From positions 1,390,834 through 1,454,833 of the forward strand of contig NW_018406762.1 in assembly GCF_002113885.1 (NCBI RefSeq): DNA of 64,000 nt, read 5' to 3'. Shown here piece after piece: positions 6,470 through 46,218 of the stretch. Under the pieces are notes generated by a model, which saw nothing but the letters and a program-made list of their open reading frames with translations, had not been told where the DNA came from and did no database searches. The translations under genes and the position numbers were made by a program. The number at the start of each line of letters is the position of its first letter. The first letter of the stretch is position 1. This DNA is from Mizuhopecten yessoensis. Its lineage: Eukaryota.

Positions 6470-8089
6470 TTACAGTCTCATTACGTGTACGGTACCGTCC
6501 TCACACCCGATCCACACGTTCCCGCACGTGTCCACACCCACCGATGTAGGTTTGGTCACTCCACGTTTCTGATCCAGGAGACACGTGGCCTGTGTACTAT
6601 CTCTCGGTAGGACATACACCTGGTTGTTAGTGTAGTCCGGTACAAACAGTCTGTCGTACTTGTCACGTGACATATTACGGATGTCCCTACTACCAACCTG
6701 CTGGCCGTTGTTGAGTTCACCAGACCATTTATATTTTGTTGTACCGGATCTGTCTGTTATGATTGATACATTATCATAGTCCGACACTGCAATGTCTCCT
6801 GACGACAAACATGTTATACACCACGCCTTCATTCCACACGTCACCTTCCTCACAATCGTACCTGTCTGATTCAGTACCACTATGACTGCAGTGTTTGTAT
6901 TAACAAACACCTCGTCCCTCTCGTTGATGCTGATGTCGTATGCTTTATGTGGTCTAATGTCAGCAAATGTTGTCACTTGTTTGTTGTGTAGTGATAGTTT
7001 ATATACAAATGTACTAAATGGATCAATGGTCATAAGTATGGCTTTTGTCCCGACAATGTTGGTTTTGTGCGGACAGAAGTCCAGTTTAACTGTCTCTTTG
7101 GCCACAGCCTCACTGTTGACCAGTACCAGAACCTGGTATTCGTGTATTGATAACCACGCGTGACTATCGTCGACTGGACTTATATCCAATATTTGATTTT
7201 GTTGCGAAACAGTAAACTTAGAGAGACGCTGAACGTGTTTACTGTCGATGTCTGTCTTCTCGTACTGGTCCCCGTGGTGTAATTCACCTAACATTTTCGT
7301 CAACAGGATGCGGTTGATATTTCCGAGAACAAAGCTTGGTTGTTTTGGTGAAACATGTTTCATCTTAACGTCATACAGGGGCAGAGTTTTCCTCAATGAC
7401 ATTTCCGTTTCAAATATGGATACACTAGATGTATCTGTCATTTCCGCCTGTTCAAGCAGACGCGTCAGCTCTTCGACATTTTTCTCCGATCGTTGAATAT
7501 CTTTCTTGTACAGCAGTGATTCCTCTTTTTCCAAAGATGCTAACTCGGCTAGCACTGCTTCCGCGATATAATCTACTTCTGCCTTTAACTTAGTCCTCTG
7601 TGAGTTTACCTCTCTCCTCGTTGTATCAATGTTGTCTTTGAACGTTTTGTTCACGCAATGTCGCTTGGACGTCTCGGTCTTGAAATTTGCTATTTTATCA
7701 GCTAACGTTGTCATATGTTCCTTAAAATGTTCCTTTTTGACAGACAGTTCGTCTTCAAAAGGTTTCCAGTTGTGCTGTTTATGATTTTTAGATAAACATA
7801 TCGAACAAATCAACTCGTTGCAGTCTGAGCAGAACATATCACACAGTTTACCGGGATGTAGTTTACATACCTCTGGCACAGGCTTGTCACCCTGACGGTT
7901 AGCCTTCCCTATCGACACGACGTCATCGTTTTTAGTTTTTCTTCCGCGTGTATGGGTTTCCTTACACCGGTCACATAAATTCTCCTGACAATCGTTACAG
8001 TACCATCTTACCCCGTCTTCACTGTCACACAAAGCACATGTGTAAGTAACGGGTTCTTGGGCACGCCGTACGGATCTGTTACTTGCCAT
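6470..8089 (-). CDS. TRIM-like protein copy 1, intact, 539 aa: B-box1, B-box2, coiled coil, NHL-like beta-propeller, no RING
   Basis: Uninterrupted 1620-nt ORF from an ATG in ACACCATGG context. B-box1 is CxxC..CxxC..LCxxC..H and B-box2 is CxxH..CxxFCxxC..ICxxC..HxxH. A helical E/K-rich segment follows, then NHL-type blades (DISINERDEVFV, LFVPDYTNNQVYV, PTSVGVDTCGNVWIG). The ORF track starts earlier at an alternative codon; the conserved ATG is at 8089. Confidence 0.9.
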   Translation of the reverse strand: MASNRSVRRAQEPVTYTCALCDSEDGVRWYCNDCQENLCDRCKETHTRGRKTKNDDVVSIGKANRQGDKPVPEVCKLHPGKLCDMFCSDCNELICSICLSKNHKQHNWKPFEDELSVKKEHFKEHMTTLADKIANFKTETSKRHCVNKTFKDNIDTTRREVNSQRTKLKAEVDYIAEAVLAELASLEKEESLLYKKDIQRSEKNVEELTRLLEQAEMTDTSSVSIFETEMSLRKTLPLYDVKMKHVSPKQPSFVLGNINRILLTKMLGELHHGDQYEKTDIDSKHVQRLSKFTVSQQNQILDISPVDDSHAWLSIHEYQVLVLVNSEAVAKETVKLDFCPHKTNIVGTKAILMTIDPFSTFVYKLSLHNKQVTTFADIRPHKAYDISINERDEVFVNTNTAVIVVLNQTGTIVRKVTCGMKAWCITCLSSGDIAVSDYDNVSIITDRSGTTKYKWSGELNNGQQVGSRDIRNMSRDKYDRLFVPDYTNNQVYVLPRDSTQATCLLDQKRGVTKPTSVGVDTCGNVWIGCEDGTVHVMRL

Positions 8090-8154
8090 GGTGTTGGTAC
8101 TTAACACACAAACAGTGAAATACTACCATTTGTTTCTGTGTCGGTACAACTATA

Positions 8155-8235
8155 ACTATACACTTCCTTGTTACGGTTATATCACGTGACTTGACCGACA
8201 GACAGTATAATGTCCCGGACTCCTGGCGCTAGGCC
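8155..8235 (-). promoter_or_regulatory. Conserved upstream block (candidate proximal promoter) with E-box TCACGTGAC and ETS-like AGGAAGTG
   Basis: The block gtcccggactcctgg...cacgtga...ccttgtt is retained 70-150 nt upstream of all ATG-bearing copies (~8155, 21395, 36230, 46300, 50360), while the more distal flanks diverge into two types. Confidence 0.4.
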
Positions 8236-9614
8236 AAAATAATCTAACTTAAAGGCAGATCTTGCTATCATACGTTACCATCATTACATGTGTGTATTAG
8301 ACATACATTTAAGTTGTGATTTGTTCTTGAACTGTGTCCCTTCGACCAAACATTTAGACTTTCAAAAGAAAACGACTAGTGTTGAATACATATGATGAAG
8401 AAGCTGTATGAGGCAATAATCTTTTTCGGCAAATTTTATGCATTACTTAATGTTAAAGGTGTATCACGTTTATTTGTGTTACGTTCATCTCATGTATATT
8501 ACATATAACGAGCTGGTCGCCGCCAAACTAGCCCGGTAACAATACAGAAGTGGCACGAAATTCCCGTTAACGTCATTTGACGTCACGAAACAGTTTATGC
8601 ACAGGGGTTCGTCACAAATGTCTAAAATTAACAAATGATTTACTGTTGAATCAAAGCACAGCAAGGCACAACTAATTAATTATCTTAGTTTGATGTGACT
8701 CATAGCAGTGTAGCCAATGTTTATTTCAGACATATGTCACAACCCCTGTACAATGATACAGATGCTTGTTAATTTTAACTTTCTGCCCCACTTTTCACTT
8801 AAGATCCACGATATCACACAGTTGTGATGACTTATGTTCATCTACTAAGTTTCGGAAAGCGTAAATACTACTGCATTATTATTTATACTATATATACCCT
8901 GTTTGTAAAAAAAAATCATCGTCAATGAAAAAACAAAGAACATTTCTAACCCCCTAAAATAAAGAATCGTTACTGTAAAGTTGACACTTGAGTGTTTTGA
9001 ATTGTTTTCAACCCCACTACAACATCTGTTTGTTATACATATGTATATTCGAGTTTTCGTGTAATGACTGTTACTTGTGACTCAATAATATTTGTATATT
9101 TTACTTTTTTAATATACATAATGTCAATGTGAAAATTGTTGATGGGTTTTGTATATTTCGACCCATGATAAATATCACTCGACTTTATAAAGAAAACGTA
9201 CCGCCTCGGGCGGAGAAGCACACTCACAAAACAGTGTGGTAGCTGTGGACGCTTACTCTGTCAGAGATGACAGGGGGCTACACATATGATCCCTTCCTCC
9301 ATGATGTCAGGAGCGGATAGTCAGGATACTTGATGTTTTTCATTATGCTATAAAACGTTATTCATATTACAATAAGTATGAAACAATTAATTGAAACTCA
9401 TATTTTATTATCTTTTTGGACCTGATGTAAGCGCGCAGGGGTCTCAATTTGGGAGGAAACTAGAGTGCTTTATTAAAGAAGAAGAATGTATAATCCACTG
9501 CACCCCCGACCACCCGATGTTTGCATGCTTTAAGGAGTTAGGGCGAACGTCATATACAAACATGATATGCGATCACCATGGTATGCACACCAAGACCTCT
9601 GTTTCAATTTTGAA

Positions 9615-9742
9615 AATAGGAAGGATGTCATAGTCAGTAGATACATAGCCCTAGCTATTAACATTATTGGTACAGGTAAATAGGAAGGATGTAATAGTCA
9701 GTAGTTACATAGCCCTACCTATTGATGTTATTGGTTCAGGTA
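9615..9742. repeat. Two units of the 64-bp minisatellite
   Basis: aaataggaaggatgt.atagtcagtag..acatagcccta.ctatt..gttattggt.caggt x2; same unit as the array at 38425-40107. Confidence 0.85.
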
Positions 9743-10033
9743 CCGTCGCGACAATCGATCCACACGTGTCCACACCCACTCTTTCAGGGGTAACCGATCC
9801 GTTTCTCTGGTAAAGAACATACACGTGATTGTTCCTCAGGTCTCGCACACAGACTCTGTCGTACTTGTCAGATGATATTTTATGGCTACTCCTACTACGA
9901 ACCTTTTGGCGATTGTTGAGTCCACCAATTGATTTATATTTAGTTATACTTGAACTGTGAACTATGATTGATATATTATAGCATGCCGACATTGCAACCT
10001 CTCCTGACGATAAACATGCAGCAAAATACACAT
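9741..10033 (-). pseudogene. Degenerate TRIM-like propeller relic (paralog of 787-1072)
   Basis: ORF 9705..10100 contains ACLSSGEVAMS, KYKSIGGLNNRQKVRSRSSHKISSDKYDRVCV and VTPERVGVDTCG, which clearly derive from the TRIM C-terminus. Confidence 0.85.
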
Positions 10034-12447: not shown

Positions 12448-12448
12448 G

Positions 12449-12481
<33 letters not shown>

Positions 12482-12482
12482 G
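12448..12482. repeat. (TCTG)n microsatellite
   Basis: About 8 TCTG units; shorter at the paralogous site ~44120-44141. Confidence 0.85.
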
Positions 12483-12958
12483 ATTCTTTTCTCTCTAACT
12501 ATCTCTTCATATATGCCTATAATTAATTACGTGTCGCAAAAATGTTTTAAACAAACATTTCATCATTATGACAATCATAATAAGATATTTTAACATTATG
12601 GTACTCGATCTTTACCTTAAGATGACATGAAATATTTCAAAATAAATCTTTATTAACTGAGTAAATAAAAACAATACCTAATCCCACATATAGATAAAAC
12701 AAAACCCTCAGCGCAGCTCACTATCATTGATTGATCAGTTCCATGCTCAGGCATTGTCGGTTCAAAATCCTTATATAACTTTAAAATGTTTTTCAAATAT
12801 GTCATTTACACCAATTGATCAATTGTTCGAATTATTCTAAAATATGAATCGATATTTGAGGGTATTTTTCAGACATTGATGAATTGTTTGTGATGATATT
12901 TACATAATGCAGTATTGTACCACGAGGTCAAATGTTCACCATGTACTATATCCTCATG

Positions 12959-13972
12959 TTACAGTCGGATCACGTGTACGGTACCGTCCACACATCCGAT
13001 CCACACTTTCCCACATGTGTCCACACCCACCGATGTAGGTTTGGTCACTCCACGTTTCTGATCCAGGAGACACGAGGCCTGTGTACTATCTCTCGGTAGG
13101 ACATACATCTGACTGTTAGTGACATTTGGTACAAACAGTCTGTCGTACTTGTCACGTGGCATCGTACATATGTCCCTACTACCAACTTTTTGACCGTTGT
13201 TGAGTTCACCAGTCCATTTATATTTGGTTGTACCAGAACTGTCTGGTACGATTGATACATTATTTAAGTCCGACACTGCAATGTCTCCTGACGACAAACA
13301 TGTAATACACCGCCCATCCATTCCACACGGTACCTTCCTCACAATCGTACCTGCATGATTCAGTACCACTATGTCTGGTGTGTTTGTACTAACTAACACC
13401 TCATCCTTCTCGTTGATACTGATGTCGTATGCTCTATGTGGTCTGATGTCAGCAAATGTTGTCACTTGTTTGTTAGGTAGTGATAGTTTATATACAAATG
13501 TATTTACTGGGTTACTGGTCATAAGTATGTCTGTTGTCTCGACCATGGTGATTCTGTGCGGACAAAAGTCAAGTTTTACTGCCTCTTTGACCACACCCTC
13601 CCTGTTGATCAGTACCAGACCCTGGTATTCGTGTATTGATAACCACGCGTGACTGTCGTCGACTTGACTTATATCCAATATTTGATTTTGTTGCGAAACA
13701 GTAAACTTAGAGAGACGCTGAACGTGTTTACTGTCGATGTCTGTCTTCTCGTACTGGTCCCCGTGGTGTAATTCACCTAACATTTTCGTCAACAGGATGC
13801 GGTTGATATTTCCGAGAACAAAGCTTGGTTGTTTTGGTGAGACATGTTTCACCTTAACGTCATACAGAGGCAGAGTTGTCCTCAATAATATTTCCGTTTC
13901 AAATATGGATACACTAGATGTATCTGTCAGTTCCGCCTTTTTAAGCAGACGCGTCAGCTCTTCGACATTTTT
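12959..13972 (-). pseudogene. TRIM-like copy 2, 5'-truncated (end of coiled coil plus propeller only)
   Basis: Open frame homologous to copy 1 from KNVEELTRLL to the stop. Homology ends abruptly at 13972, with no B-boxes and no ATG at the junction. The AATAAA site is mutated (12861-12870 ggtatttttc). Confidence 0.85.
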
Positions 13973-14028
13973 GTTCAATCACCTTGAAAAAGGAGTTTAT
14001 GATATTTCCAAATGTGTAGCATACTTAC

Positions 14029-14510
14029 GGAAGCAGTTGATTGTGACCACCGTCCTGCTTGTCTTGATCATTCTTGTAAAAGGGAGTAGGTGTCATTCAC
14101 AGTCATAGCACTCTCTTTATTTTCAAATTGAAAATTTCATTCCCGAAGGTAAATGTGACACCTTACCTTTGTGTGGTAACCTCAATGTCCAAACTCATTT
14201 GAGCCCCGGACACCAGTTCCATTAATCTGTCATCATAGTCCAATTCTCTTCCATCTACTCGTAGAACAATGGCCCCATCACCAGGCGAACCAAAATTGTA
14301 TTGCCTAACGAACACCACCAACACCTAGTTTCATCAAAAGTAAACAACTCAGAAAGGAAGTTTAATCAAATAACTACGATGCAACGGATTTTACACTGGT
14401 CCTTTGATAAAAACTCACTCCCAAATTAGAACAGTAATGTTGAAGATGAGTTGATGGACTATAGCTCTTTCATCACCAGCAATGCCATTTTTGATCATTT
14501 ACACTTCATT
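14029..14510 (-). pseudogene. Decayed spliced gene fragment (3 putative exons, ubiquitin-like appearance)
   Basis: Minus-strand GT-AG bounded segments: ~14510-14419 (donor gtgagt), 14324-14167 (ctag| ... |gtaagg; 52 open codons VLVVFVRQYNFGSPGDGAIVLRVDGRELDYDDRLMELVSGAQMSLDIEV) and 14072-14029 (donor gtaagt). Both introns are 94 nt. Upstream stops and a 1-nt phase mismatch suggest decay. Confidence 0.4.
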
Positions 14511-18064: not shown

Positions 18065-18097
<33 letters not shown>

Positions 18098-19690: not shown

Positions 19691-21312
19691 TTACAGTCTC
19701 ATCACGTGTACGGTACCGTTCAAACACCCGATCCACACGTTCCCACACTTGTCCACACCCACTGCTGTAGGACTGACCACTCCATGTTTCTCGTCCAGGA
19801 GACACGTGGCCTGTGTACTATCTCTCGGTAGGACATACACCTGATCGTTTTTGTAGTCTAGCACTAACAGTCTGTTGTACTTGTCACGTGATATATTATG
19901 GAGTGACCTACTACCGACATTATGACCATTGTTGAGTTCACCAGTCCATTTATATTTGGTTGTACCAGATCTGTCTGTTATGATTGATACATTTGTATAG
20001 TCCGACACTGCAATGTCTCCTGACGACAAACATGTAATAAACCGCCCATTCATTCCACACGTCACCTTCCTCACAATCGTACCTGACTGATTCAGTACCA
20101 CTATGTCTGGTGTGTTTGTACTAACAAACACCTCGTCCCTCTCGTTGATACTGATGTCATGTGGTTCATGTGGCTTGATGTCAGCAAATGTTGTCACTTG
20201 TGTGTTGTGTAGTGATAGTTTATATACAAATGTACTATCATCAGAACAGCTCATAAGTATGTCTGTTGTCCCGACCATGGCTATTCTGTACAGACAAAAG
20301 TCCAGTTTTACTGTCTCTATGACCACACCCTCCCTGTTGATCAGTACCAGACCATGGTATTGGTCTATTGATAACCACGCGTGACTGTCGTCGACTGGAC
20401 ATATACTCCGTATTTCATTTCGTTGAGTAACAGTAATCTTCGAGAGACGTTGAACGTGTTTACTGTCGATGTCTGTCTTTTCGTACTGGTTCCCGTGGTG
20501 TAATTCACCTAACATTTTCGTCAACAGGACGCGGTTAATACTTCCGGTAACAAAGCTTGGTTGTTTTGGTGAAACATGTTTCATACTATATATTCATACA
20601 GGGGCAGAGTTTTCCTCAATGACATTTCCGTTTCAAATATGGATACACTAGATGTATCTGTCAGTTCCGCCTTTTCAAGCAGACGCGTCAGCTCTTCGAC
20701 ATTTTTCTCCGATCGTTGAATATCTTTCTTGTACAGCAGTGATTCTTCTTTTTCTAAAGATGCTAACTCGGCCAGGACTGCTTCCGCGACATAATCTACT
20801 TCTGCCTTTAACTTAGTCCTCTGTGAGTTTACCTCTTTCCTCGTTGTATCAATGTTGTCTTTGAATGTTTTGTTCACGCGATGTCGCTCTGACGTGTCGT
20901 TCTTGAAATGTGCTATTTTATCAGTTATCGTTGTCATATGTTCCTTAAAATGTCCCTTTTTGACAGACAGTTCGTCTTCAAAAAGTTTCCAGTTGTGCTG
21001 ATCATGACGTTTAGAAAAACATGTCGAAGAAATCAACTCGTTGCAGTCCGAGCAGAAAAAATCACACAGTTTACCGGGATGGCGTTTACATACCTCTGGC
21101 ACAGGTAAGTGGTCCTGACGGTTAGCCTCCCCGATCGACACGACGTCATCGTTTTTAGTTTTCCTTCCGCGTGTATGGGTTTCCTTACACCGGTCACATA
21201 AATTCTCCTGACAATCGTTACAATACCATCTTACCCCGTCTTCACTGTCACACAAATCACACGTGTAGGTGACAGGTTCCTGTGCACGCCGTACGGATCT
21301 GTTACTTGCCAT
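19691..21312 (-). pseudogene. TRIM-like copy 3, full length with a +2 frameshift at the coiled-coil/propeller hinge
   Basis: The span is 1622 nt versus 1620. The 7-nt cttaacg is replaced by the 9-nt actatatat at ~20585-20593, giving ORFs 20581..21312 (243 aa) and 19691..20584 (297 aa). A B-box2 Cys is also lost (ELISSTC versus ELICSTC). Confidence 0.85.
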
Positions 21313-22603
21313 GGTGTTGGCCCCTTCACAGAACACGACAACACTTAACACCCAAACTGTGAAATGCCACCATTTTGTTGTTAGCTTTAACTGTACACTC
21401 CCTTGTTCCGGGTATATCAATGTGATGAAACCGACCGACACGTATGAGGTCCCGGACTCCTGGCGTTAGGCCAAAAACATAGATAAGTGTGTGCATTATA
21501 AACATACGTTACATTATACAGTAGATAATGTAATGAAGTTAACTTTTTACCTGTAGCTATCGTTTACCGTGTTTAATAACAGACAGTTAATGGCCTAGAA
21601 GAAAAAGAAGAAAAAAATACATTGCACAAAGCTACATTGACACAACTGTCAAAAATCTATAAGGGGAGGCAGACAAGTGACATTGACCTTATAATTAAAC
21701 GTTCAAGGTACTAATCACAGTCAGTGTTACTTGAAGTATTACATAACAATAGGTTAAGAGATCTCAGGGTTCGAAATTGACATCTGCGTGGTATTTCATA
21801 AAATGATAAAATAATAATAATAATTCGAGGTTCTTATGTACCGCTCTATCACGACCTAGGTCGTAGGCCGTTTAAAGACGGTTCACAAATTTTGATTTTT
21901 TGTTATGATATTCATCTCTTGATGGAATAAATAGTAACTTTCAAATCTTAACTTCTGTCAAGTATGTCAATTAATGAAGAAAATACGTGACATTCATCGC
22001 TCTTGTACAGTTTTAAAATGTCAACATCTGACACATTTGTGTCGAACATGGAAGAGTATGTCGTTGATAAATTTTAAAGCATATCATAATATTTTCCAAA
22101 AGAAGAACATCTTAATTTTTTGTTGAAAATTTTAGTCGTGTACATGAAGAAAACCAGAAATATCTCAAATTGACTGATTTATGACGGATTTTGCATTCCA
22201 GAGCCCCCGGCNCCCCCCACCCTCCTCTTGAGGCCTCAATATATTCCTGTGTCGGTTCCAATGCAACTGTATCAAACAAAAACACATGAAAAAGGAGAGT
22301 TATTATTCATGACACAGCGTTAAGTTCTCGTACTGAGTCAAAACCACAATGCAGATCTGTCACACGAGTTATTTCCCGTAAGACAGTCACCAAGTGATCA
22401 TAAACTACTGCAATGTCGTTGGCAAAACAGAAGAAATATAAAGGTGATATTATGTATCAAATAATAGGATTAAAGATAAAAATATACCGTCTGAAATGTC
22501 TCGGTGAAGAGAATGAAAAAAGGTCAATTGAAAAAACCAATTGAGATATCAAGCTTACTTATAATGCCTTTCAGAGCAAAGCAATAACAAGTATAAAATT
22601 ATT

Positions 22604-25600
22604 TCAATTTCAACATACTTGATTGACAAAGAAGAATGTTACACTGTCAAAAGGATTGGATAACAGGCTTATAGCCTTTATAAATCCTCTCCATTCGTGG
22701 TAGATATATGGACATAATGGATTGATATTATAATTATAAAGATTTTGCTTACTGTCAATAATTAATCATTGGAAATAGGTAACATAATTGACGTTAGAAC
22801 CTGTTTTTAGACAATATGTTGCCATAAAAAATTAATGTACAGTACTGTTCATTTCTAAACCTCATGCAGCGGATGTAAGATAATATGATATATACATAAC
22901 TATTTAGTAACGGATACAATATGAATATGGACGAATTGGCCCGATGATTTAATCTCTAGTACATATACTATTTAATTATGATACATTTTATTTTGCCGTA
23001 ATAAATTTGTGTATCCATTATATAGGGTCTGCACATTTTGGTATAGAGAAGAATTGCAGGTATATAAAGTCCATAGAAAGTTATATATAATGATATGATC
23101 ACAAAATAAATTGCTTAAAATTTCGATTATATTTCTTATAGATATTGTCTATAGTTCTACTGCCAGTTATGTACTTAAGTATTATTAGATATTTACATAA
23201 TTAACAGGTTATTATACAAAGTACGGAATGGAAGGGGGATAACTCCCAAAACATAGTGTATTAATTAGATTCAGTCTACAATGTAGGTAAGATATATATA
23301 TATATATTTGTCATAGACCGCATATAGTTTACAAACAATTGCAAGCTTTAATATCAGATTGAAGACCGCACAGTCCTTGTGTTACGTTTAGGTCCTCAAC
23401 TGAACACTGTACAGGATCCAGAGCAAATCTTATTGCAGTATAAATTCACAGTAATGCATTTGAGTATATATATGGTAAAATTGCAGATCTTAAGTACCTA
23501 CACTAGAAATTAAAGATATAAGGAGTTTAGGAGAATATAAGAGGAAAGCATAACAATATCATGATAACCAGCCATAGAGGCACTCTTGCACGAATGTATG
23601 TTGTTTTTATAAATAAGTGTTATTATCTACAAATATATATAGTATGTATGTATATATAATTACTCAACATGTATGAAATTGCATGGTATTATACTCGATA
23701 TTCAACAAATCTTTTAGTTTTAGCTATATATTTTAGGACAGAGTTAAGAATTTCCATATTAACACCTTCGTTACATATTTGACAATATACAATGTAGTAA
23801 GTTGGTAAGATGAAAGTGGTAATGGTTTCCAATAAGTTCAAGTTCATTTTTTAGTAATGCTCTTTGAACTGAAAACAGGGGACAGTGAAGAAAAAAAATG
23901 TGAGACAGTTTCATGGTTTAAATCACAAGCACACAGAATTTTCTTTTAAATGATCAATATATAGGTCAAAATTTAAGTTGCTACATTCATTTCTAAGCTG
24001 AAAAAGCTTTATTTTTGAATATATCTGAAACACTCACATCTTCCTCTTCACTGACATTTGACATGTATGTTTAAAAGTTTCTTAAAATTGTTAATAAAGG
24101 TTGCTTGTACTGTAGTAGGTGAGAGTTTATTAAACTCTCGGAGCATTGAAGAAAAAACTATGAGTATATAGTTACATTGTATTTGATCTACAGAGTGGAG
24201 GGCTAAATATTCTATTTCTATGCAATGAGTGTATATTTGCTTCATTATTGTTAATAAAAGTGTTAATTGTTTCTTGCAAGTATAAAGGTGCATGGCCATG
24301 TAGTATTTTGTACATTAGGATCAATTGATGATTTTTTCGACGAATTTCTAATGTTTCCAATCTTTATTCCATATAAAATAAATAACGTAATGTTCCTCTT
24401 CTCAGCCCTGTTATAATTCTTGCTGATTCGAATGTGGATAGATTCTAGTAAATGTTTTAGTTGGGTTGTACAATTATTCCAAATTACAGCAGCATATTCA
24501 AGTAAAGGTCTTATGAATGCAAAATATATTTTTATTCGAGTTTCTCTGCTACATGTAAGTTTATATTTCAAACAGCCTAGTATATTTATTCTAGCATATG
24601 CTTTTTTATATATGGGATTCCCAGGTACCATTTTCATGAAGAGTATTTCTGAGTGGATTCATTAGAAATTACATTATTTTGAAACAAAATTGGTGGTATA
24701 GCAATTTCTTTTTTTCCTGGAAAACAATACAGATTTTGTTTTTGTTGGATTGAAATGTATATCCCATAGTTTAGCCCATGCACTAATATTTTTTAAATCA
24801 TTTGTAAGAAATTGTGCTGACTGATCAGGATTGTTATCAACAATAACATATAGAGAGGTGTCATCAGCAAAATGTTTTACTTTACTTGAACAAAGGTCAG
24901 TAATATCATTTATATATAATAAAAACAATAACGACCCAGAACTGATCCCTGGGGGATTCCTGGACAACTTCAGTACTTGAAAGGTGGGAGGTTGGTTGCA
25001 GAAAATGAAGATTAACAGTAATGTCCTCTACTAATAAAATATCTAGAGAAAGGTCTGATGCTTTTTCAAGAATGCTATCAAGTTTCGTCCAAAATTCAAC
25101 ATTTGAATCAGGAGGCCTGTATAGACAGCCTAATAAAAATATATGTTTGTTGATAGTGACTTCAAACAATAGTAGCTCAATATCATATATTCTAAGATCA
25201 TGTCTCCTTTTGGTTAAAACAGAATCTTTATAATAGACCAGTACGCCACCTCCCTGTCTGTTAAGTCTGTCTTTTCTATGAGGATTTATCGAATGAGAAT
25301 CAATAATAATATCACTGTTTGGGATTTCAGGTTTAAGATGCGATTCAGTGATACAGATAATGTCATTGTTATTTAGTTCAGCTTCAATTAAGTAAGTTTT
25401 ATTACGTACTGATCGAGAATTTAAATGGACAATATCGAGATTTCCTAAGGAACCAGGGTTTTCCTCTTTATCAGACGATACTGTCAATAACTTGAGAATG
25501 ATACTGTGTATAACTGATAGCGACAATCGGGATAAGTATAAATTAAAATTCGATAGCCTGAATAGGAAATGTATCTTATTAAGTAGATACTAACGAGAAA

Positions 25601-29277: not shown

Positions 29278-29336
29278 GATGATCATCATCATCATCATCA
29301 TCATCATCATAATCATTTCATCATCATCATCATCAA
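29195..29336. repeat. Compound (GAT)n/(CAT)n microsatellite in inverted arrangement
   Basis: About 20 GAT units directly followed by CAT units; poly-Met/poly-Ile ORFs are artefacts. Confidence 0.9.
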
Positions 29337-30070: not shown

Positions 30071-30238
30071 CGTGATATGAAGTCAACAAGAGAATGCACA
30101 TGGTGCCATTTGGGCTTAGTTCTGAGTTCTCGGTACTGTTGACGCTGGATTTGCTGCAAATTGAAACAGTTGAATGGACTACAAAAATGTATTCAGTGAA
30201 AATATTTTTTTGCTCTTAATATGTTTGTTCTCTCATAT

Positions 30239-30716
30239 TCACTTTGTGTTTACGCCACCGGATATCGGCACCACGGAGGCGGAGATTTTGTATGATGGGC
30301 CACGGTTGATGATGAATATTTTTTGATGACTTCCTAAACTGCATTGACAAGCATATGCTTAAGGCTTTATGTATCAATATCTCATATTTTTAGCGTTTAT
30401 CGAAGTCATAGAAATCAATCAAATAATCCCTCAGATAACGATATAATTTAAATTTCAGCTACACAAAAGATGCCCCGGCGTTCATTGGTACCAGGCAGTA
30501 TTTTGCAAGGTGATAAAACATATCTTCAATATATTATGTCGATGTCATTTCATTAATTTTCAATTGAGATAGTTTAGGAGTGTTCTACCAGGTCTTGCTA
30601 TTAAATGAGGCCTATAAACAAAAACCTAATGAACCAAAAACTCATCCTCACGCTGCTAACATTTACAATGGTTCCGCTTCCCTGGTCCGATGTCTGGTGC
30701 CGTTAACACACGGTGA
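30239..30716. mobile_element. Degenerate MITE with ~80-bp imperfect TIRs
   Basis: tcactttgtgtttacgccaccggatatcggcaccacggaggcggag is the reverse complement of ttccgcttccctggtccgatgtctggtgccgttaacacacggtga. The duplicate at ~49165-49643 has better preserved arms. Confidence 0.55.
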
Positions 30717-31059
30717 TCTTTCAGTGATAGTGTCTCCCGTTCTAGTCGTGAGATATTTATGTCATCACACAGAGAGTAGATTAGCCACGCATACTTGTGA
30801 AGACATAATGAAAAAGATTGAATACGTCTCTTTTTATAATTTCCACCATCATACATTGTAGCTGGCGTAATAACTTCTCTATTTGTAATCGACATTTCAG
30901 ATGAGAAAGAACTGATCATAGTATACATTTCGAATAAGACGGATACACAGGATTACGTGGGCTAAGATTCGTCTGGATTTTCATTTTTAAGAACCTCTGA
31001 GACAGAGGTTTGTCTGCCTTGCCATCAAATGGGGGAAAGTTCTCTTTACTTAACGACTA

Positions 31060-32516: not shown

Positions 32517-33858
32517 GTGTTTGACAAATTTGTCCCTGTGACTTTGTAAGTAGGTATTGTAATGTCATTTTCCTTCTCAAATTTTATTAGCTCTATCCCA
32601 AAAAACTATCATTCAAATCTTATGAATCCATTCCTTTTGGTTCTTTAGAACAAATTGTTTGAAATGTTGTTGACCTCTGTGACCTTTAAAGTAGGTTGAG
32701 GTCATTTTCATTTGCAATATTATGTGAGCTCTATCCCAGGAAGCCACCAGCCAAATATTATATGCCTTTCGATTATTCAGAAGAAGCTGTTTGATGTTTT
32801 GAACATTTTTGACACCTTGAAAGTAGGTCAAGGTTATTTTCATCCTCAAACTTTGTCGGGCTCTTTCCCATGAATCCACCTTCCACATATAAAGATTATA
32901 TACCTTTTAGTTCTTCAGAAGTAGTCGTTTGAAGCGTTTGATATATTTGACCGCTGTGACCTTGAAAGTAGTTCAAAGTCATTTTAATTCTCACACTTTG
33001 TCGGGCTTCATCCCAGAAAGCCATCAGCCAAATATAAAAATGCTTTACCTTTTAGTTCTTCAGAAGAAGGCGTTTGAAGCGTTTGACCACTGTGACCTTG
33101 AAAGTAAATCAAAGTCGTTTTAATTCTCAAACCTTGTTGGGCTCTATCCCAGGAAGCCAACAGCCAATATAAAAACTCTATACATTTTAGTTCTTCAGAA
33201 CACATTTGACCCATGTGACCTTTAAAGTAGGTCAAGGTCATTTCCTTCTCAGCCTTTGTCGGGCTTTATCCCAGGAAGCCAACTGCCAAATTTAATACGT
33301 TTCAGTTCTTCAGAAGAAGTCGTTTGAAGCGTTTTACACATTTGACATACGTGACTTAGAAAGTAGGTCAAGGTCATTTCCTTCTCAACCTTTGTCGGGC
33401 TTTATCACAGGAAGCCAACTGCCAAATTTAATAATTTTCAGTTCTTCAGAAGAAGTCGTTTGAAGCGTTTGACACATTTGACACCGTGACTTAGAAAGTA
33501 GGTCAAGGTCATTTTCGTTCTCAAACTTTGTACATGTCCGGTTCCATTCCAGGACGCCATCAGTCAAATATGAAGATTCCATACCTTTAAGCTCTTCATG
33601 AAAATTGGTTTGAAGCTATTGACAGATTTGACCGCTGTGACCTTGCAAGAAGATCAAGGTCATTTTAATGAAGAAATTTAATAGTACTCAATCACAGGTA
33701 CCTACTGACCAAACATCATAACCCTAGGCCCTCAAGTTCTTCAGAAGATTCGCTCAAAGAAAAAGTTGACGGACAGACTAACAAATGACGACGAACGCTG
33801 TAGTATGGCATACGCTCACATTCACATGGCCCTTCGGTCCCGGTGAGCTATTAAAAAA
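32517..33858 (+). mobile_element. Second HINE/Helitron-like element copy (5' end deleted, internal ~120-140-bp repeats expanded)
   Basis: Same TGACCTTGAAAGTAGGTCAAGGTCA units and terminal gctcac...ggcccttcggtcc.ggtgagct hairpin as 5008-5825, at the paralogous position 3' of TRIM copy 4. Confidence 0.6.
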
Positions 33859-34518
33859 ACTATTTAGAGTTTCAACTTTAATTGTGTTTTCTACATGAAT
33901 AGAAAATAAGAAATATTGTACAAATATAATACCTTTTAAAAGTATGTAATTGGATGTTTGTATTATTTGGAAACGAACTTTTCGAGTTAAAAAACTTAAT
34001 GGGGATAATTTCATGCAGCACACTCTTAAATATTGATAAAGTGTTTTTCTGTCTGATTCTGTCTCTCTCCCCCTTCTCTTTAACTACCTCTTCATGTGTG
34101 CATATGATTAATTACGTGGCGCAAAAATGTCTTCAAGAAATATTTCATCATTGTACAAATTGTAATAATATATTTAAACTTGATGGTACTGGAGATTTAC
34201 CTTAAGATGACATGAAATATTTCAAAATAGATTCTTAAAAAATAGGTAAATAAATAAAACGAAACCCTCAGTGCAGCTCACTAGTTAACTCGCTGACCAG
34301 TTCAATGATCGGGCATTGTCGGTTCAAAAACCTTATTACTTTAAAAAAAAATTCACAGATGTCATTAACACCAATTGATCAATTGTTCGAATGTCTCTAC
34401 AAAATGAATCGATATTTGAGAGTGTTTATTAGACATTGATGAATTGTTTGTGATGATATTTACATAATGAAGTAATGTACCACGAGGACAGGTGTTTATC
34501 ATGTACTCTTTCCTCATG

Positions 34519-36138
34519 TTACAGTCTCATCACGTGTACGGTACCGTCTATACAACCAACCCACACGTTCCCACACGTATCCACACCCACCGCTGTAGGT
34601 TCGATCACTCCATGTTTCTTGTCCAGCAGACACATGGCCTGTGTACTATCTCTATGTAGGACATACACCTGATCGTTGAAGGAGTCTGGTACAAACAGTC
34701 TGTCGTACTTGTCACGTGACATCTTAAAGAGGTTCCTACTACCAACCTGTTGACCGTTGTTGATTTCACCAGACCATTTATATTTTGTTGTACCAGATCT
34801 GTCTGTTACGACTGATACATTACTAAAGTCCGACACTGCAATGTCTCCTGATGAAAAACATGTAATAAACCACCCACGTATTCCACACGTCACCTTCCTC
34901 ACAATCGTACCTGACTGATTCAGTACCACTATGTCTGGTGTACCTGTACTAACAAACACCTCCTGCCTCTCGTTGATGATGATGTCACATGCTTCATGTG
35001 GTCTGATGTCAGCAAATGTTGTCACTTGTTGGTTGTGTAGTGATAGTTTATGTACATATGAATTGTCATTATGACTGGTCATAAGTATGTCTGTTGTCCC
35101 GACCATGGTGATTTTGTACGGACAGAAGTCCAGTTTAACTGTCTCTTTGACCACACCCTCGCTATTGATCAGTACCAGACCCTGGTATTGATATATTAAT
35201 AACCACGCGTGACTGTCGTCGACTGGACATATATCCAATATTTGATTTCGTTGAGTAACAGTAGACGTAGAGAGACGTTGAACGTGTTTACTGTCGATGT
35301 CTGTCTTTTCGTACTGGTTCTCGTGGTGTAATTCACCTAACATTTTCGTCAACAGGACGCGGTCGATACTTCCGGTAACAAAGCTTGGTTGTTTTGGTGA
35401 AACATGTTTCATCTTAACGTCATACAGGGGAAGAGTATTCCTTAATGACACTTCCGTTTCAAATATGGATACACTAGATGTATCCGTCAATTCTGCCTTT
35501 TCAAGCAGACGCGTCAGCTCTTCGACATTTTTCTCCGATCGTTGAATATCTTTCTTGTACAGCAGTGATTCCTCTTTTTCCAAAGATGCTAACTCGGCCA
35601 GCACTGTTTCCGCGATACAATCTACTTCTGCCTTTAACTTAGTCCTCTGTGAGTTTACCTCTTTCCTCGTTGTATCAATGTTGTCTTTGAACGTTTTGTT
35701 CACGCGATGTCGCTCTGATGTCTCGTTCTTGAAATTTGCTATTTTATCAGCTAACGTTGTCATATGTTCCTTTAAATGTTCCTTTTTGACAGACAGTTCG
35801 TCTTCAAAAAGTTTCCAGTTGTGTTGTTTATGATTTTTAGATAAACATATCGAACAAATCAACTCGTTGCAGTCCGAGCAGAACATATCACACAGTTTAC
35901 CGGGATGTAGTTTACATACCTCTCGTAGAGGCTTGTCGCCCTGACGGGTAGCCTTCCCTATCGACACGACGTCATCGTTTTTTGTTTTCCTTCCTCGTGT
36001 ATGGGTTTCCTTACACCGGTCACATAAACTCTCCTGACAATCGTTACAGTACCATCTTACCCCATCTTCACTGTCACACAGAGCACACGTGTAGGTAACG
36101 GGTTCCTGAGCACGCCGTACGGACCTGTTACTTGCCAT
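34519..36138 (-). CDS. TRIM-like protein copy 4, intact, 539 aa
   Basis: 1620-nt ORF collinear with copy 1 without indels; B-box ligands intact; AATAAA and E-box retained. Confidence 0.9.
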   Translation of the reverse strand: MASNRSVRRAQEPVTYTCALCDSEDGVRWYCNDCQESLCDRCKETHTRGRKTKNDDVVSIGKATRQGDKPLREVCKLHPGKLCDMFCSDCNELICSICLSKNHKQHNWKLFEDELSVKKEHLKEHMTTLADKIANFKNETSERHRVNKTFKDNIDTTRKEVNSQRTKLKAEVDCIAETVLAELASLEKEESLLYKKDIQRSEKNVEELTRLLEKAELTDTSSVSIFETEVSLRNTLPLYDVKMKHVSPKQPSFVTGSIDRVLLTKMLGELHHENQYEKTDIDSKHVQRLSTSTVTQRNQILDICPVDDSHAWLLIYQYQGLVLINSEGVVKETVKLDFCPYKITMVGTTDILMTSHNDNSYVHKLSLHNQQVTTFADIRPHEACDIIINERQEVFVSTGTPDIVVLNQSGTIVRKVTCGIRGWFITCFSSGDIAVSDFSNVSVVTDRSGTTKYKWSGEINNGQQVGSRNLFKMSRDKYDRLFVPDSFNDQVYVLHRDSTQAMCLLDKKHGVIEPTAVGVDTCGNVWVGCIDGTVHVMRL

Positions 36139-38335: not shown

Positions 38336-38424
38336 CCTGATTTAAGGAGTTAGGGAGAACGTCATACACACTAATGATATGTGATGGTCATGGTATGTAC
38401 ACCAAGTCATCTGTATCAATTTTG

Positions 38425-40107
38425 TAAATAGGAAAGATGTCATAGTCAGTAGTTACACAGTCCTAGCTATTAACGTTATTGGTGCAGGTAAAAAGGACGG
38501 ATGTAATGGTCAGTAGCTACATAGCCCTAGTAAATAGGAGGGATGTAATAGTCAGTACTTACATAGCCCTAGCTATTAACGTTATTGTTACAGGTAAATA
38601 GGACGGATGTAATAGTCAGTAGTTACATAGCCCTAGTTATTAACGTTATTGGTACAGGTAAATTGGAAGGATGTCATAGTCAGTAGTTGCATAACCCTAG
38701 CTATTAACGTTATTGGTACAGGTAAATAGGAAGGATGTAATATTTAGTAGTTACATAGCCCTAGCTATTAACGTTATTGGTATAGGTAAATAGGAAGGTT
38801 GTAATAGTTAGTAGTTAAATAGCCCTAGCTATTAACGTTATTGGTACTGGTAAATAGGAAGGATGTAATAGTCAGTAGTTGCATAACCCTAGCTATTAAT
38901 GTTATTGGTACAGGTAAATAGGAAGGATGTACGAGTTAGTAGTTACATAGCCCTAGCTATTAACGTTATTGGTACAGGTAAATAGGAAGGATGTAATAGT
39001 CAGTAGTTGCATAACCCTAGCTATTAACGTTATTGGTATAGGTAAATAGGAAGGTTGTAATAGTAAGTAGTTACATAGCCCTAGCTTTTAACGTTATTGG
39101 TACAGGTAAATAGGAAGGATGTAATAGTTAGTAGTTACATATCACTAGCTATTAACGTTATTGGTACAGGTAAATAGGAAGGATGTCATAGTCAGTAGTT
39201 GCATAACCCTAGCTATTAACGTTATTGGTACAGGTAAATAGGAAGGATGTAATAGTCAGTAGTTACATAGCCCTATGAAATAGGAAGGATGTAATAGTCA
39301 GTAGTTAAATAGCCCTAGCTATTAACGTTATTGGGTCAGGTAAATAGGAAGGATGTAATAGTCAGTAGTTACATAGCCCTAGTAAATAGGAAGGATGTAA
39401 TAGTTAGTAGTTACATAGCCCTATGAAATAGGAAGGATGTAATAGTCAGTAGTTACATAGCCCTATGAAATAGCAAGGATGTAATAGTCAGTAGTTAAAT
39501 AGCCCTAGCTATTAACGTTATTGGTACAGGTAAATAGGAAGGATGTTATATTTAGTAGTTACATAGCCCTAGCTTTTAACGTTATTGGTACAGGGAAATA
39601 GGAAGGATGTAATAGTTAGTAGTTACATATCACTAGCTATTAACGTTATTGGGTCAGGTAAATAGGAAGGATGTCATAGTCAGTAGTTACATAGTCCTAG
39701 CTATCAACGTTATTGGTACAGGTAAATAGGAAGGATGTAATAGTTAGTAGTTACATAGCTCTAGCTATTGACGTTATTGGTACAGGTAAATAGGAAGGAT
39801 GTAATAGTCAGTAGTTACATAGTCCTAGCTATTAACGTTATTGGTACAGGTAAATAGGAAGGATGTTATATTTAGTAGTTACATAGCCCTAGCTAGTAAC
39901 GTTATTGGTACAGGTAAATAGGAATGATGTAATGGTCAGTAGTTACATAGTCCTACCTATTAACGTTATTGGTACAGGTAGATAGGAAGGATGTAATAGT
40001 CAGTAGTTAGATAGCCCTACCTATTAACGTTATTGGTACAGGTAAATAGGAAGGATGTAATAGTCAGTAGTTACATAGCCCTAGCTATTAATGTTATTGG
40101 TACAGGG
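38425..40107. repeat. 64-bp minisatellite array (~1.7 kb) with ~42-bp truncated variants
   Basis: Unit taaataggaaggatgtaatagtcagtagttacatagccctagctattaacgttattggtacagg. Confidence 0.95.
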
Positions 40108-42180: not shown

Positions 42181-42331
42181 GGACGGTACAGTCGCGACAA
42201 TCGATCCACACGCGTCCGCTCCCACTCTTTTAAGGGTAACCAATCATTGTCTCTACTAAAGGACATACACCTGGTTGTTCCTCTAGTCTCGTACTTGTCT
42301 CATGATGTATCATGGCTACTCCTACTACGAA
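42181..42331 (-). pseudogene. Third degenerate TRIM propeller relic
   Basis: ggacggtacagtcgcgacaatcgatccacacgcgtcc...aaggacatacacctggttg matches 804-940 and 9741-9900; truncated by a deletion at 42331. Confidence 0.75.
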
Positions 42332-42736
42332 GCATGGAGCTCCCCAAAGGGTTAAATAAATATCCGACTATTTAGTTAACCGGATAACAGTTGACAACCT
42401 AAATTAAAAACAACGTCGTTTTCGTCCATATGTCGGCATCACGTCTGTCCGCTTGTCTGTAATGTCTGCTTTTTAAAGATCGCCTTGATATGTGATTTAG
42501 TACGACCCTGCTTGATGGCATTTAAAATCTCTACATAAAGTCGGATATATAAGTATTTCATGGGAGTCTTAATTACGCAAAATATATGTAATGAACAAAT
42601 CAGTATCTTATTCATTTCTCATCAAGAATTTAGAGCACCAAATTGATTGTAAATCTGATTTGACTTTTTAAAAACACATTTTATTGTTACAGAGTATACA
42701 GCAAAGACTGGACATAAGTTATTGTAACCTACAAAA

Positions 42737-43225
42737 CTTCCCTCTTATTCCAGTTACACAACTGTGTTTGATACCAGTCATTCCCCTCTTATTTCAGTTA
42801 CAGAACCGGGTTTGATACCAGTCATTCCCCTCTTATTTCAGTTACAGAACCGGGTTTGATACCAGTCATTCCCCTCTTATTTCAGTTACAGAACCGGGTT
42901 TGATACCAGTCATTCCCCTCTTATTTCAGTTACAGAACCGGGTTTGATACCAGTCATTCCCCTCTTATTTCAGTTACAGAACCGGGTTTGATACCAGTCA
43001 TTCCCCTCTTATTTCAGTTACAGAACCGGGTTTGATACCAGTCATTCCCCTCTTATTTCAGTTACAGAACCGGGTTTGATACCAGTCATTCCCCTCTTAT
43101 TTCAGTTACAGAACCGGGTTTGATACCAGTCATTCCCCTCTTATTTCAGTTACAGAACCGGGTTTGATACCAGTCATTTATTCTCCTCTTATTCCAGTTA
43201 CACAACCGGGTTTGATACCAGTCAT
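42737..43225. repeat. 44-bp minisatellite, 9 identical units plus 2 variant flanking units
   Basis: ttcccctcttatttcagttacagaaccgggtttgataccagtca repeated exactly over 42781-43176, with no spacers. Confidence 0.95.
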
Positions 43226-44598
43226 TTAAGATATAATTACAACGCAGTCGAATAAAAGGTTGGAAAATTGAATAATAATATGTCCCTTGGTTGGAGTTAT
43301 TTGTTGTCGTTAAATTTTCGTCCACTTTAAATCTAAATCTAATTACACAACACGAATTGGTTGTACACCATGCTAGGGTTGTTGGTATGTGTAGAAATGA
43401 TTAAGCATAAAGGAAGTCTAAAAGTGATATATTTACCTTTCTATCGAAATGTTATTTTCAGTTGATTTGCAAATAATTTTATAAAAAGTTCACTTTGATG
43501 GATTTGGATATTTTGACAACAAGTCATTTATGTGAACGGTTTCCTCCCTAACGACATGACATTGATATTCCAGGGGGTTCGTTCACTGAAATATGTCATG
43601 ACAAAATTAAAGTCTCTGACATTTTCTAAATGATACAAGTACACTAGTCAATCAAATAGCTACATTTGTGCCTTATATTTCACCATGATATGTCCATGGT
43701 TGAAACGGTATAAACAGTTATGATCCCAAAGAACCTTCCACTAAGTTTGTTTGACTTAAAGTAATATCCGTTATATATAGAAGATGGACCAAGCAGATGG
43801 ATTTTGTAGCCCAGAGTTACTTTCCCTGTCTACCTATGAATCGTTCAGTGCTCTCCTCATTTTCATAGACTTTGTGGCCCTTAAATTGGATTTTAACTTC
43901 GGAGCTATTCTTTAGCAGTAATACCTATACAAATGCTTTATTTAGAGCTTCACAGTTTAGATAGTTTTATACATGAACAGAGAATAAGAAAATTATATAC
44001 AAATCTAAATCCATTAAACATCATGTATTTAGATGTTTGTATTGTTTGGAAACGAACGTTTCGAGTAAAAAACCTTACTGAAGATGTTTTATATAGCACG
44101 TTCTTAAATATTGACAAAGTGTCTGTCTGCCTGTCTGTCTGATTCTTTTCTCTCTAACTATCTCTTCATATGTGCCTATAATTAATTACGTGTCGCAAAA
44201 ATGTTATAAACAAATATTTCATCATTATGACAATCATAATGGTACTCGATCTTTACCTTAGGATGACATGATATATTTCAAAATAAATCCTTGGAAAACT
44301 AAGTAAACAATAACAATACCTTATCCCACAAATAAATAAAACAAAACCCTCAGTGCAGCTCACTAATTTTGGTTGGTCAGGTCAGTGATCAGGCATTGTC
44401 GGTTCAATAACCTTATTACTTTAAAATGTTTTTCACATATGTCATAAACACCAATTGATCAATTGTTCGAATGTCTCTACAATATAAATCAATATTTGAG
44501 GGTATTTATTAGGCATTGATGAATTGTTTGTGATGATATTTATATCATGTAGTATTGTACCACGAGGTCAAGTGTTCATCATGTACTCTTTCTTCGTG

Positions 44599-46218
44599 TT
44601 ACAGTCTCATGACGTGTACGGTACCGTAGCTACACCCGATCCACACGTTCCCACACGTGTCCACACCCGCTACTGTAGGTTCGATCACTCCATGTTTCTG
44701 GTCCAGGAAACACGTGGCCTGTGAACTATCTCTCGGTAGGACATGCACCAGGTTGTTGTAGGAGTCTGGTACAAACAGTCTGTCGTATTTGTCACGTGAC
44801 ATCTTATGGAAGGCCCTATTACCATCATTTTGACCGTTGTTGATTTCAACAGTCCATTTATATTTGGTTGTACCAGATCTGTCTGTTATGATTGATACAT
44901 TTGTAAAGTCCGACACTGCAATGTCTCCTGACGACAAACATGTAATACGCCACCCTTTCATTCCACACGTCACCTTCCTAACAATCGTACCTGACTGATT
45001 CAGTACCACTATGTCTGGTGTGTTTGTACTAACACACACCTCGTCTCTCTCGTTGATGCTGATGTCGAATGCGGTATGTGGTCTGATGTTAGCAAATGTT
45101 GTCACTTGTTTGTTGTGTAGCGATATTTTATATACAAATGTACTATCATTATAACTGGTCATAAATATGTCTGTTGTCCCGACCATGGCGATCATGTATG
45201 GACAGAAGTCCAGTTTAACTGTCTCTTTGACCACTCCCTCCCTGTTGACCAGTACCAGTCCCTTGTATTCACGTATTGATAACCATGCGTGTCTGTCGTC
45301 GACTGGACAGATACCCCATATATGATTTTGTTGGGTAACAGTAAACTTCGAGAGACGTTGAACGTCTTTACTTTCGATGTTTGTCTTCTCGTACTGGTTC
45401 TCGTGGTGTAATTCTCCTAACATTTTCGTCAACAGGACGCGATCGATATTTCCGGTAACAAAGCTTGGTTGTTTTGGTGAAACATGCTTAATCTTAACGT
45501 CATACAGGGGCAGAGTTTTCCTCAATGACATTTCCGTTTCAATTATGAATACACTAGATGTATCCGTCATTTCCGCCTTTTCAAGCAGACGCGTCAGCTC
45601 TTCGACGTTTTTCTCCGATCGTTGAATATCTTTCTTGTACAGCAGTGATTCCTCTTTTTCTAAAGATGCTAACTCGGCCAGCACTGCTTCCGCGATAGAA
45701 TCTACTTCTGCCTTTAACTTAGTCCTCTGTGAGTTTACCTCTTTCCTCGTTGTATCAATGTTGTCTTTGAACGTTTTGTTCACGCGATGTCGCTCTGACG
45801 TCGCGTTATTGAAATTTGCTATTTTATCAGCTATCGTTGTCATATGTTCCTTAAAATGTTCCTTTTTGACAGATAGTTCGTCTTCAAAAAGTTTCCAGTT
45901 GTGCTGTTTATGATTTTTAGATAAACATGTCGAACAAATCAACTCGTTGCAGTCCGAGCAGAACATATCACACAGTTTACCGAGATGTAGTTTACATACC
46001 TCTGGTACAGGCTTGTAGCCCTGACGGTTAGCCTTCCCTATCGACACGACGTCATCGTTTTTTGTTTTCCTTCCTCGTGTATGGGTTTCCTTACACCGGT
46101 TACATAAATTCTCCTGACAATCGTTACAGTACCATCTTACCCCGTCTTCACTGTCACACAAAGCACACGTATAGATAACGGGTTCCTGGGCACGCCCTAC
46201 GGATCTGTTACTTGCCAT
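44599..46218 (-). CDS. TRIM-like protein copy 5, intact, 539 aa
   Basis: 1620-nt ORF from the conserved ATG (ACACCATGG), collinear with copies 1 and 4; AATAAA retained. Confidence 0.9.
   Translation of the reverse strand: MASNRSVGRAQEPVIYTCALCDSEDGVRWYCNDCQENLCNRCKETHTRGRKTKNDDVVSIGKANRQGYKPVPEVCKLHLGKLCDMFCSDCNELICSTCLSKNHKQHNWKLFEDELSVKKEHFKEHMTTIADKIANFNNATSERHRVNKTFKDNIDTTRKEVNSQRTKLKAEVDSIAEAVLAELASLEKEESLLYKKDIQRSEKNVEELTRLLEKAEMTDTSSVFIIETEMSLRKTLPLYDVKIKHVSPKQPSFVTGNIDRVLLTKMLGELHHENQYEKTNIESKDVQRLSKFTVTQQNHIWGICPVDDRHAWLSIREYKGLVLVNREGVVKETVKLDFCPYMIAMVGTTDIFMTSYNDSTFVYKISLHNKQVTTFANIRPHTAFDISINERDEVCVSTNTPDIVVLNQSGTIVRKVTCGMKGWRITCLSSGDIAVSDFTNVSIITDRSGTTKYKWTVEINNGQNDGNRAFHKMSRDKYDRLFVPDSYNNLVHVLPRDSSQATCFLDQKHGVIEPTVAGVDTCGNVWIGCSYGTVHVMRL

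Follow-up and report, generated by a model that had tools for sequence, protein, structure and literature searches.

A stretch of 64,000 nucleotides on a contig of the scallop Mizuhopecten yessoensis (G000:C3435:1390834-1454833), called the window below, was analysed for an array of genes that encode B-box proteins ending in a β-propeller. Six intronless copies of one B-box1/B-box2/coiled-coil/propeller gene were found on the minus strand of the window. Three of them, copies 1, 4 and 5, were intact, and each encoded 539 amino acids. Copy 1 (locus L003) occupied 6470–8089, with the methionine of its MASN start at 8089, copy 4 occupied 34519–36138 and copy 5 (locus L004) occupied 44599–46218. 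The residues of copy 4 served as the reference numbering. Copy 2 (12959–13978) was truncated at its 5′ end and retained the C-terminal 339 amino acids (residues about 202–539), which comprised the end of the coiled coil, the linker and the propeller; its homology to copy 4 ended at 13972. Copy 3 (19691–21312) was full-length, with its frame broken at codon 240 by an insertion of 2 bp. In addition, it carried serine in place of the zinc-ligand cysteine of B-box2 at position 95, a cysteine that was invariant in 28 intact paralogs. Copy 6 (49692–50276) was an N-terminal fragment that comprised both B-boxes and the beginning of the coiled coil, followed by divergence and a stop, and its 3′ part was missing. 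The open reading frames (ORFs) of the array ran over 6470–8107, 12959–13978, 19691–21441 (two frames), 34519–36138 and 44599–46242, all on the minus strand, with the copy 6 fragment at 49692–50300. The homology between units extended from about 240 bp upstream of the coding region to about 800 bp downstream of it, and the spacers between units contained satellites and retroelement debris. An earlier note on this DNA had described five copies with nearly invariant strand cores, coiled coil and length. The N-terminal half was indeed the more conserved part, with a nonsynonymous divergence (dN) of 0.03–0.05 compared with 0.13 in the propeller, but copies 2 and 3 were not intact.

The domain composition of the proteins was evaluated by profile searches and structure prediction. 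In copy 4, B-box1 was located at about 35965–36093, B-box2 at about 35791–35919, the coiled coil at about 35434–35814 and the propeller at 34522–35286 (residues 285–539), each on the minus strand. Pfam searches of the three intact copies returned the two B-boxes and no other domain (PF00643 twice, E = 5e-12 to 6e-13; PF22586 also matched), and the cysteine and histidine ligands of the B-boxes were invariant in the 28 paralogs. A profile built from these paralogs matched the B-box1/B-box2/coiled-coil region of TIF1-beta/KAP1 (TRIM28) with E = 1.8e-16. Its C-terminal part matched the NHL-derived Pizza6 designer propellers (1e-8) and the PknD sensor domain (0.005). Several paralogs are named TIF1- or TRIM33-like in RefSeq, in keeping with the first match; in contrast to TIF1-beta, the scallop proteins lack the RING and the PHD-bromodomain, and a propeller stands in place of the C-terminal chromatin module. 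No C3HC4-type pattern was present in the six frames of the window, an upstream exon included, and no RING was found by Pfam. The label TRIM, which the earlier note had used, was therefore given up, and the proteins are RING-less, TRIM-like B-box/coiled-coil/NHL-like proteins rather than bona fide TRIMs.

The fold was predicted with AlphaFold2 (AF2) by using the paralog alignment. The N-terminus was modelled poorly, whereas the propeller (residues 285–539) was predicted with confidence (predicted local distance difference test 85–95) and contained 24 strands arranged as six four-stranded blades. Helices were predicted at residues 109–143, 152–217 and 223–235, so that a coiled coil followed the B-boxes. 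The top matches of the propeller in the Protein Data Bank, as found by Foldseek, were the NHL domains of Mei-P26, Brat, TRIM2, TRIM3, Thin and TRIM71 (TM score 0.72–0.76, 13–16% identity), with 7nyq, 4zlr, 7b96, 6d69, 1q7f, 7qrw and 8j72 as the top entries (E about 1e-13). The nearest clusters of the ESM Atlas were molluscan NHL clusters, in which PF01436 was assigned to 36–88% of the members.

The faces of the propeller were assigned according to its topology. Consecutive loops of an up-and-down propeller alternate between the two faces. In the last blade of the AF2 model, strand A comprised residues 514–519, strand B 525–529 and strand C 533–538, and the N-terminal strand 287–293 was left over as strand D. 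As far as strand register goes, the number of strands and the way the last blade is registered agreed with an N-terminal strand that closes blade 6 from the outside and with both termini on the bottom face. In published TRIM-NHL structures, the outermost position of blade 6 is taken by the first strand, which thereby completes the blade, and RNA is bound on the face opposite the N-terminal domain (PMC5908797); the C-terminus of the NHL domain lies on the bottom surface, and the groove on the top is the binding site (PMC9634614). On the basis of loop alternation, strand register and this published topology, the odd-numbered loops were therefore identified as the D-A and B-C loops of the top face. 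The earlier note had quoted eleven sets of short patches that differ among the five copies and had placed them on one face of the propeller. All eleven were present in the five-copy alignment where the note had put them, such as QILDIS/QILDIS/EIRSIC/QILDIC/HIWGIC at residues 298–303 and IDPFS/SNPVN/CSDDS/SHNDN/SYNDS at residues 355–359. Every patch lay in an odd-numbered loop or at the start of the next strand, at most two residues in. The predicted topology supports the placement of these patches, and of the selected sites described below, on the top face, where Brat, LIN-41 and TRIM71 bind their ligands.

Selection was examined in a codon alignment of 27 intact paralogs, from which L002, a near-duplicate of copy 1 (98%), and L030 were left out. 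The tree was obtained by IQ-TREE under GY+F3X4, and the log-likelihood (lnL) of IQ-TREE was reproduced by our own codon-likelihood program. The ratio of nonsynonymous to synonymous rates (ω) was 0.62 under model M0. M2a was strongly preferred to M1a (lnL −14571.7 vs −14781.6, 2ΔlnL = 420), with ω2 = 5.3 in 3.4% of sites. The comparison of M7 with M8, which had been named as a check in the earlier note, gave 2ΔlnL = 492 and ω = 4.8 in 5.2% of sites. A site was regarded as selected if the posterior for ω > 1 was above 0.95. There were 22 such sites, two in the N-terminal half (45 and 174) and 20 in the propeller, namely residues 299, 301, 341, 342, 356, 357, 358, 382, 384, 399, 423, 424, 438, 439, 469, 471, 486, 487, 513 and 530; the latter are called hot sites. 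Fifteen of the 20 hot sites fell in odd loops, and the other five were at the first one or two residues of strand A. All six blades held hot sites. The earlier note had regarded a scatter of variable residues over the structure as evidence against its idea; none of the 52 even-loop residues was selected, and the clustering of hot sites on the odd loops is far beyond chance. When each third of the propeller was given a separate tree, the M1a/M2a comparison still yielded 2ΔlnL values of 88, 124 and 93. The N-terminal half (243 codons) on its own tree gave 2ΔlnL = 6.8 and no site above 0.95. Residue 45 in B-box1 (T/F/A; about 36004–36006) and residue 174 in the coiled coil (S/Y/C/F/D; about 35617–35619) had posteriors of 0.98–1.0 on the common tree and lost significance on that of the N-terminal half. 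The conserved scaffold proposed in the earlier note was found to be under purifying selection, with an N-terminal ω of 0.2–0.4, and 85 sites were negatively selected.

The nonsynonymous excess was further evaluated by three-fold cross-validation, in which the hot sites were set from two clades and a shared synonymous rate (α) and nonsynonymous rate (β) were fitted in the third. The values of β were 4–6.5 and those of α were 1.25–3; the resulting β/α was 2.2, 1.6 and 5.2 (p = 0.046, 0.029 and 0.0044), compared with 0.8 for the remaining propeller. For the clade to which the window belongs, hot codons that had been defined independently showed a dN 4.8 times (95% confidence interval (CI) 3.4–7.0) the synonymous divergence (dS) of the rest of the propeller. 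Moreover, the same positions had raised entropy in paralogs of Pecten maximus (p = 2e-6) and in a mixed Ylistrum/Pecten set (p = 1e-9). Dual-rate grid tests at single sites, which have low power, gave 17 sites with p < 0.05. Twelve of them were in the propeller, and 11 of these 12 were in odd loops or no more than five residues into the next strand. Among the 27 paralogs, each hot site showed 5–12 residue types. Tyr was enriched 6-fold at these sites, Phe 2.9-fold, Arg 2.3-fold and Asn 1.9-fold, a composition that resembles that of an interface. The net charge of the 20 hot residues ranged from −2 to +5 across the paralogs.

Close paralog pairs often differed by 2–3 nucleotides per hot codon. 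For L011 and L018, such changes were seen in all five differing hot codons and in 7 of the 81 other differing codons. At codons 485–489, L029 was identical to the non-sister L020, two synonymous flanking changes included, whereas its sister L026 agreed with L019 and L025. This segment of L029 marks a patch transfer, in which the tract moved was at least 13 and at most about 39 bases long. The two-codon patch of copy 5 at 530–531 was exactly that of L012, a member of another clade on another contig. Each patch had 11–25 distinct haplotypes among the 27 sequences. The sharing of whole patch haplotypes across clades was also considered as proof of transfer; it was not decisive, because the few shared ones could be ancestral. 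Short-tract conversion, possibly together with multi-nucleotide mutation, moves loop variants between the paralogs, and the local synonymous rate is therefore raised. Two observations on pairs of loci are described here separately. L018 and L011, an otherwise close pair, differed at the five consecutive codons 399–403; L011 resembled L015 and L019 there, and for L018 none of the fetched copies was a close donor. This segment may have come by conversion from a paralog outside the sample, or may reflect a compensated frameshift. In L006 and L008 (G000:C3435:387159-388763 and 430942-432546), the 243 N-terminal codons contained no synonymous and one nonsynonymous difference, and the propeller had a dS of 0.039 and nonsynonymous differences at 16 codons, of which 12 lay in top loops. 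It seems that conversion homogenised the scaffold half of the pair while the propeller diverged.

The gene family was large and confined to scallops in the searches made. At least 82 scored matches were obtained in the genome from 758 first-look candidates; about 48 of these matches were full-length open frames, and many copies were in tandem arrays on contigs C3435, C2372, C3415 and C5031. Sequence homologues were found in scallops only (Ylistrum, Pecten and Argopecten), and all were less similar than the paralogs within the species, which marks the expansion as largely lineage-specific. The RefSeq models of the paralogs begin at the same methionine, and their names were ‘uncharacterized protein LOC1104527xx’, TIF1-alpha-like, TIF1-beta-like and TRIM33-like. 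A B-box orthogroup has been recorded as expanded in bivalves (PMC8382680). Literature searches on expansion or selection of TRIM or NHL genes in bivalves or scallops returned general statements only, and no description of a hypervariable recognition face on an NHL propeller was found in the searchable literature.

Expression of copy 4 was evaluated with read data. Contigs from two runs of different studies, X13 (recorded as RNA) and X1 (guessed to be RNA), covered 33545–35978, i.e., from the 3′ flank to near the start codon. They matched copy 4 at ≥97% and contained exact pieces of 359–401 bases. None of these contigs lay over the 2.2 kb upstream of copy 4, and a transcript was therefore favoured over carry-over of DNA. 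Neither splice joints nor defined transcript ends of copy 4 were resolved in the read data. This thin evidence weakly suggests that copy 4 is transcribed in some samples at a low level.

These genes are probably members of a large, scallop-lineage family of RING-less TRIM-like proteins, in which the top face of the propeller is hypervariable under diversifying selection. Several results weigh against this reading. The face assignment is based on topology and published NHL structures, and the Pfam NHL model PF01436 had no match at E up to 1 in the three intact copies. The expression of intact copies, to which the earlier note had attached weight, was weakly supported for copy 4 by the contigs of one RNA run and one guessed-RNA run, but two deep 2026 RNA-seq runs held almost no reads on copy 4. 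Furthermore, the pairwise homoplasy index (PHI) indicated recombination (p < 0.002) overall and within two clades, and the likelihood ratios of the whole-alignment site models were therefore inflated. The Nei-Gojobori (NG86) dN/dS within hot codons was 0.65–0.94 (CI 0.4–1.9), which is not above 1. This ratio was low because synonymous-type differences were also high there; the proportion of synonymous differences (pS) in hot codons was 0.50, compared with 0.15 elsewhere in the propeller. A simulation of point substitution at ω = 5.3 gave a pS of 0.24, well below the observed value (P = 0.0003), and the idea that an artefact of the NG86 method alone produced the high pS was thus rejected. When they were treated as one class defined by structure, the top loops had a pairwise ω of 0.5–1.3, which was never significantly above 1. 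A gradient was seen among the structural classes (top loops 0.8–0.9, strands 0.6–0.7, bottom loops 0.3–0.5), and values above 1 were reached in the site-level tests only.

These points are accommodated by an explanation without adaptive diversification, in which the tips of the top loops are unconstrained and short conversions and multi-nucleotide mutations among the more than 80 paralogs make ω > 1 an artefact. A counting-based dN/dS of about 0.9, a hot-codon synonymous rate raised 1.25- to 3-fold, the significant PHI, the clear patch transfer, the common changes of 2–3 nucleotides per hot codon in close pairs and a top-loop ω near 1 would all be expected under relaxed constraint of this kind. 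However, β/α exceeded 1 in three independent clades although the synonymous rate was specific to the site class, the dN of the hot sites was 4.8 times the background dS, and the same positions recurred in other species. The composition rich in Tyr, Arg and Phe is interface-like, and the bottom loops are also exposed, yet none of their residues was selected. The synonymous divergence of flanking codons, only 2–3 positions off, was also at the background; it was 0.13–0.19 at 1–6 codons from hot sites, compared with 0.17 far away. A related idea, that the patches are older segments on a scaffold homogenised by conversion, was rejected on the same values. Relaxed constraint is hence considered quite unlikely. 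The claim of diversifying selection in the earlier note was upheld by the site models, the segment trees and the cross-validated dual-rate fits, but was tempered by the counting-based ratio, the recombination and the patch transfers. Diversifying selection was kept as the preferred reading because a nonsynonymous excess over the local synonymous rate remains.

The nature of the ligand was considered as well. The proteins could be diversified post-transcriptional regulators; as in Brat, LIN-41 and Mei-P26, the top face would bind RNA, and the paralogs would have diverged in which endogenous, transposon or viral RNAs, instead of proteins, they recognise. The closest solved folds are RNA-binding TRIM-NHL domains, the same face is used for RNA in published structures (PMC5908797, PMC9634614), and Arg is enriched at the hot sites. 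Nevertheless, the net charge of the hot residues shows that the face is not uniformly basic, and the identity to RNA-binding NHL domains is only 13–16%; this possibility is thus regarded as doubtful, though worth keeping in mind. Collapsed or expanded haplotypes or misassembled repeats in place of real paralogs are very improbable. The assembly consists of 82,659 contigs, and the pair of copy 1 and truncated copy 2 was repeated about 70 kb upstream on the same contig (G000:C3435:1327481-1334827) at about 98% identity; the dS between L002 and copy 1 was 0.02–0.05, and this repeat is either a recent segmental duplication or a pair of haplotypes assembled in tandem. By contrast, the copies in the window differ by 11–16% in nucleotides and have different flanks, satellites and breakpoints. 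Many paralogs have RefSeq models in this and three other scallop genera, and the contigs from independent runs matched copy 4 exactly over 359–401 bases.

According to the preferred reading of diversifying selection, the proteins would be cytosolic or nuclear. A TIF1/KAP1-type B-box1-B-box2-coiled-coil scaffold, kept by purifying selection, carries the six-bladed NHL-like propeller. The D-A and B-C loops, together with the mouth of the central channel, make up its predicted top face, where about 20 hypervariable positions are spread over the six blades. Each paralog would then show a surface of its own in which Tyr, Phe, Arg and Asn abound, and these surfaces together may amount to a germline-encoded repertoire of binding specificities. 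Its diversity would arise from tandem birth-and-death duplication, from point substitution under diversifying selection and from gene conversion of loop patches in short tracts of tens of bases. By analogy with NHL domains and TRIMs, respectively, the top face may bind ligands and the coiled coil may mediate dimerisation.

Three known systems were compared with the scallop family, of which TIF1-beta was described above. Structurally, the TRIM-NHL proteins (Brat, LIN-41/TRIM71, Mei-P26 and TRIM2/3/32) are the closest; they share the six blades and have a binding face on the top, and closure of blade 6 by the N-terminal strand, as in these proteins, is predicted for the scallop propeller. The scallop proteins differ from them in the low identity, in the lack of a Pfam NHL score and in having neither a RING nor a filamin domain. 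Canonical TRIM-NHL proteins are single-copy, slowly evolving developmental regulators, whereas the scallop genes number more than 80 and encode a hypervariable face. The closest functional analogue is provided by the loops of TRIM5alpha/TRIM22 and of the teleost finTRIM B30.2 (PRY-SPRY) domain. These proteins share with the scallop family the B-box/coiled-coil scaffold, the tandem lineage-specific expansion and selected surface loops in the recognition domain. According to two reports, the positively selected residues of TRIM5alpha/TRIM22 and finTRIM cluster in loops on the surface of the recognition domain at the C-terminus (PMC2657112, PMC2151084). Unlike them, the scallop family has an NHL-like propeller instead of B30.2, has no RING and so no intrinsic E3 ligase module, and occurs in a bivalve host.

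To our knowledge, bivalves have no adaptive immunity. Herpes-like viruses and vibrios cause mass mortalities among them, and their innate-immune gene families are hugely expanded. Conflict with pathogens or selfish elements would be a plausible driving force of the diversification, and a putative immune or antiviral role is put forward tentatively. A more specific proposal, which is rather unlikely in its full form, is a repertoire of germline-encoded intracellular receptors that use an NHL propeller in place of SPRY, LRR or Ig domains. About 20 top-face residues in eleven loop patches would be diversified by selection, and very short conversion tracts would shuffle these patches as combinatorial cassettes among more than 80 RING-less paralogs over evolutionary time; the proteins would recognise proteins or RNAs of viral or transposon origin, with RING-bearing TRIM partners for signalling. 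If the proteins are receptors, a new scaffold would stand beside the diversified recognition domains Ig, LRR, SPRY, FREP and C1q. With 20 defined positions, specificity would be directly testable, and the visible short patch transfers would offer a natural system in which micro-conversion and selection build a repertoire.

Several minor features of the array were also recorded. A segment just 3′ of copy 6 (49130–49822) was 92% identical to 30204–30894, which lies about 3.6 kb downstream of copy 4, and this likeness is a trace of rearrangement inside the array. A minus-strand ORF of 206 amino acids between copies 3 and 4 (24906–25526) had a weak match to the endonuclease/exonuclease/phosphatase family (E = 9e-4) and is probably what is left of a LINE-type retroelement. 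Upstream of copy 4, a 64-bp satellite formed about 25 units (38424–40106), and a two-unit remnant of it was present at the matching place upstream of copy 1 (9614–9742). Other tandem arrays with periods of 44, 20 and 18 bp were located at 42740–43226, 53218–54731 and 62744–63818, and the 18-bp array gave rise to long spurious ORFs at 62828–63865. Single N positions occurred in the window at 22212 and 41130.

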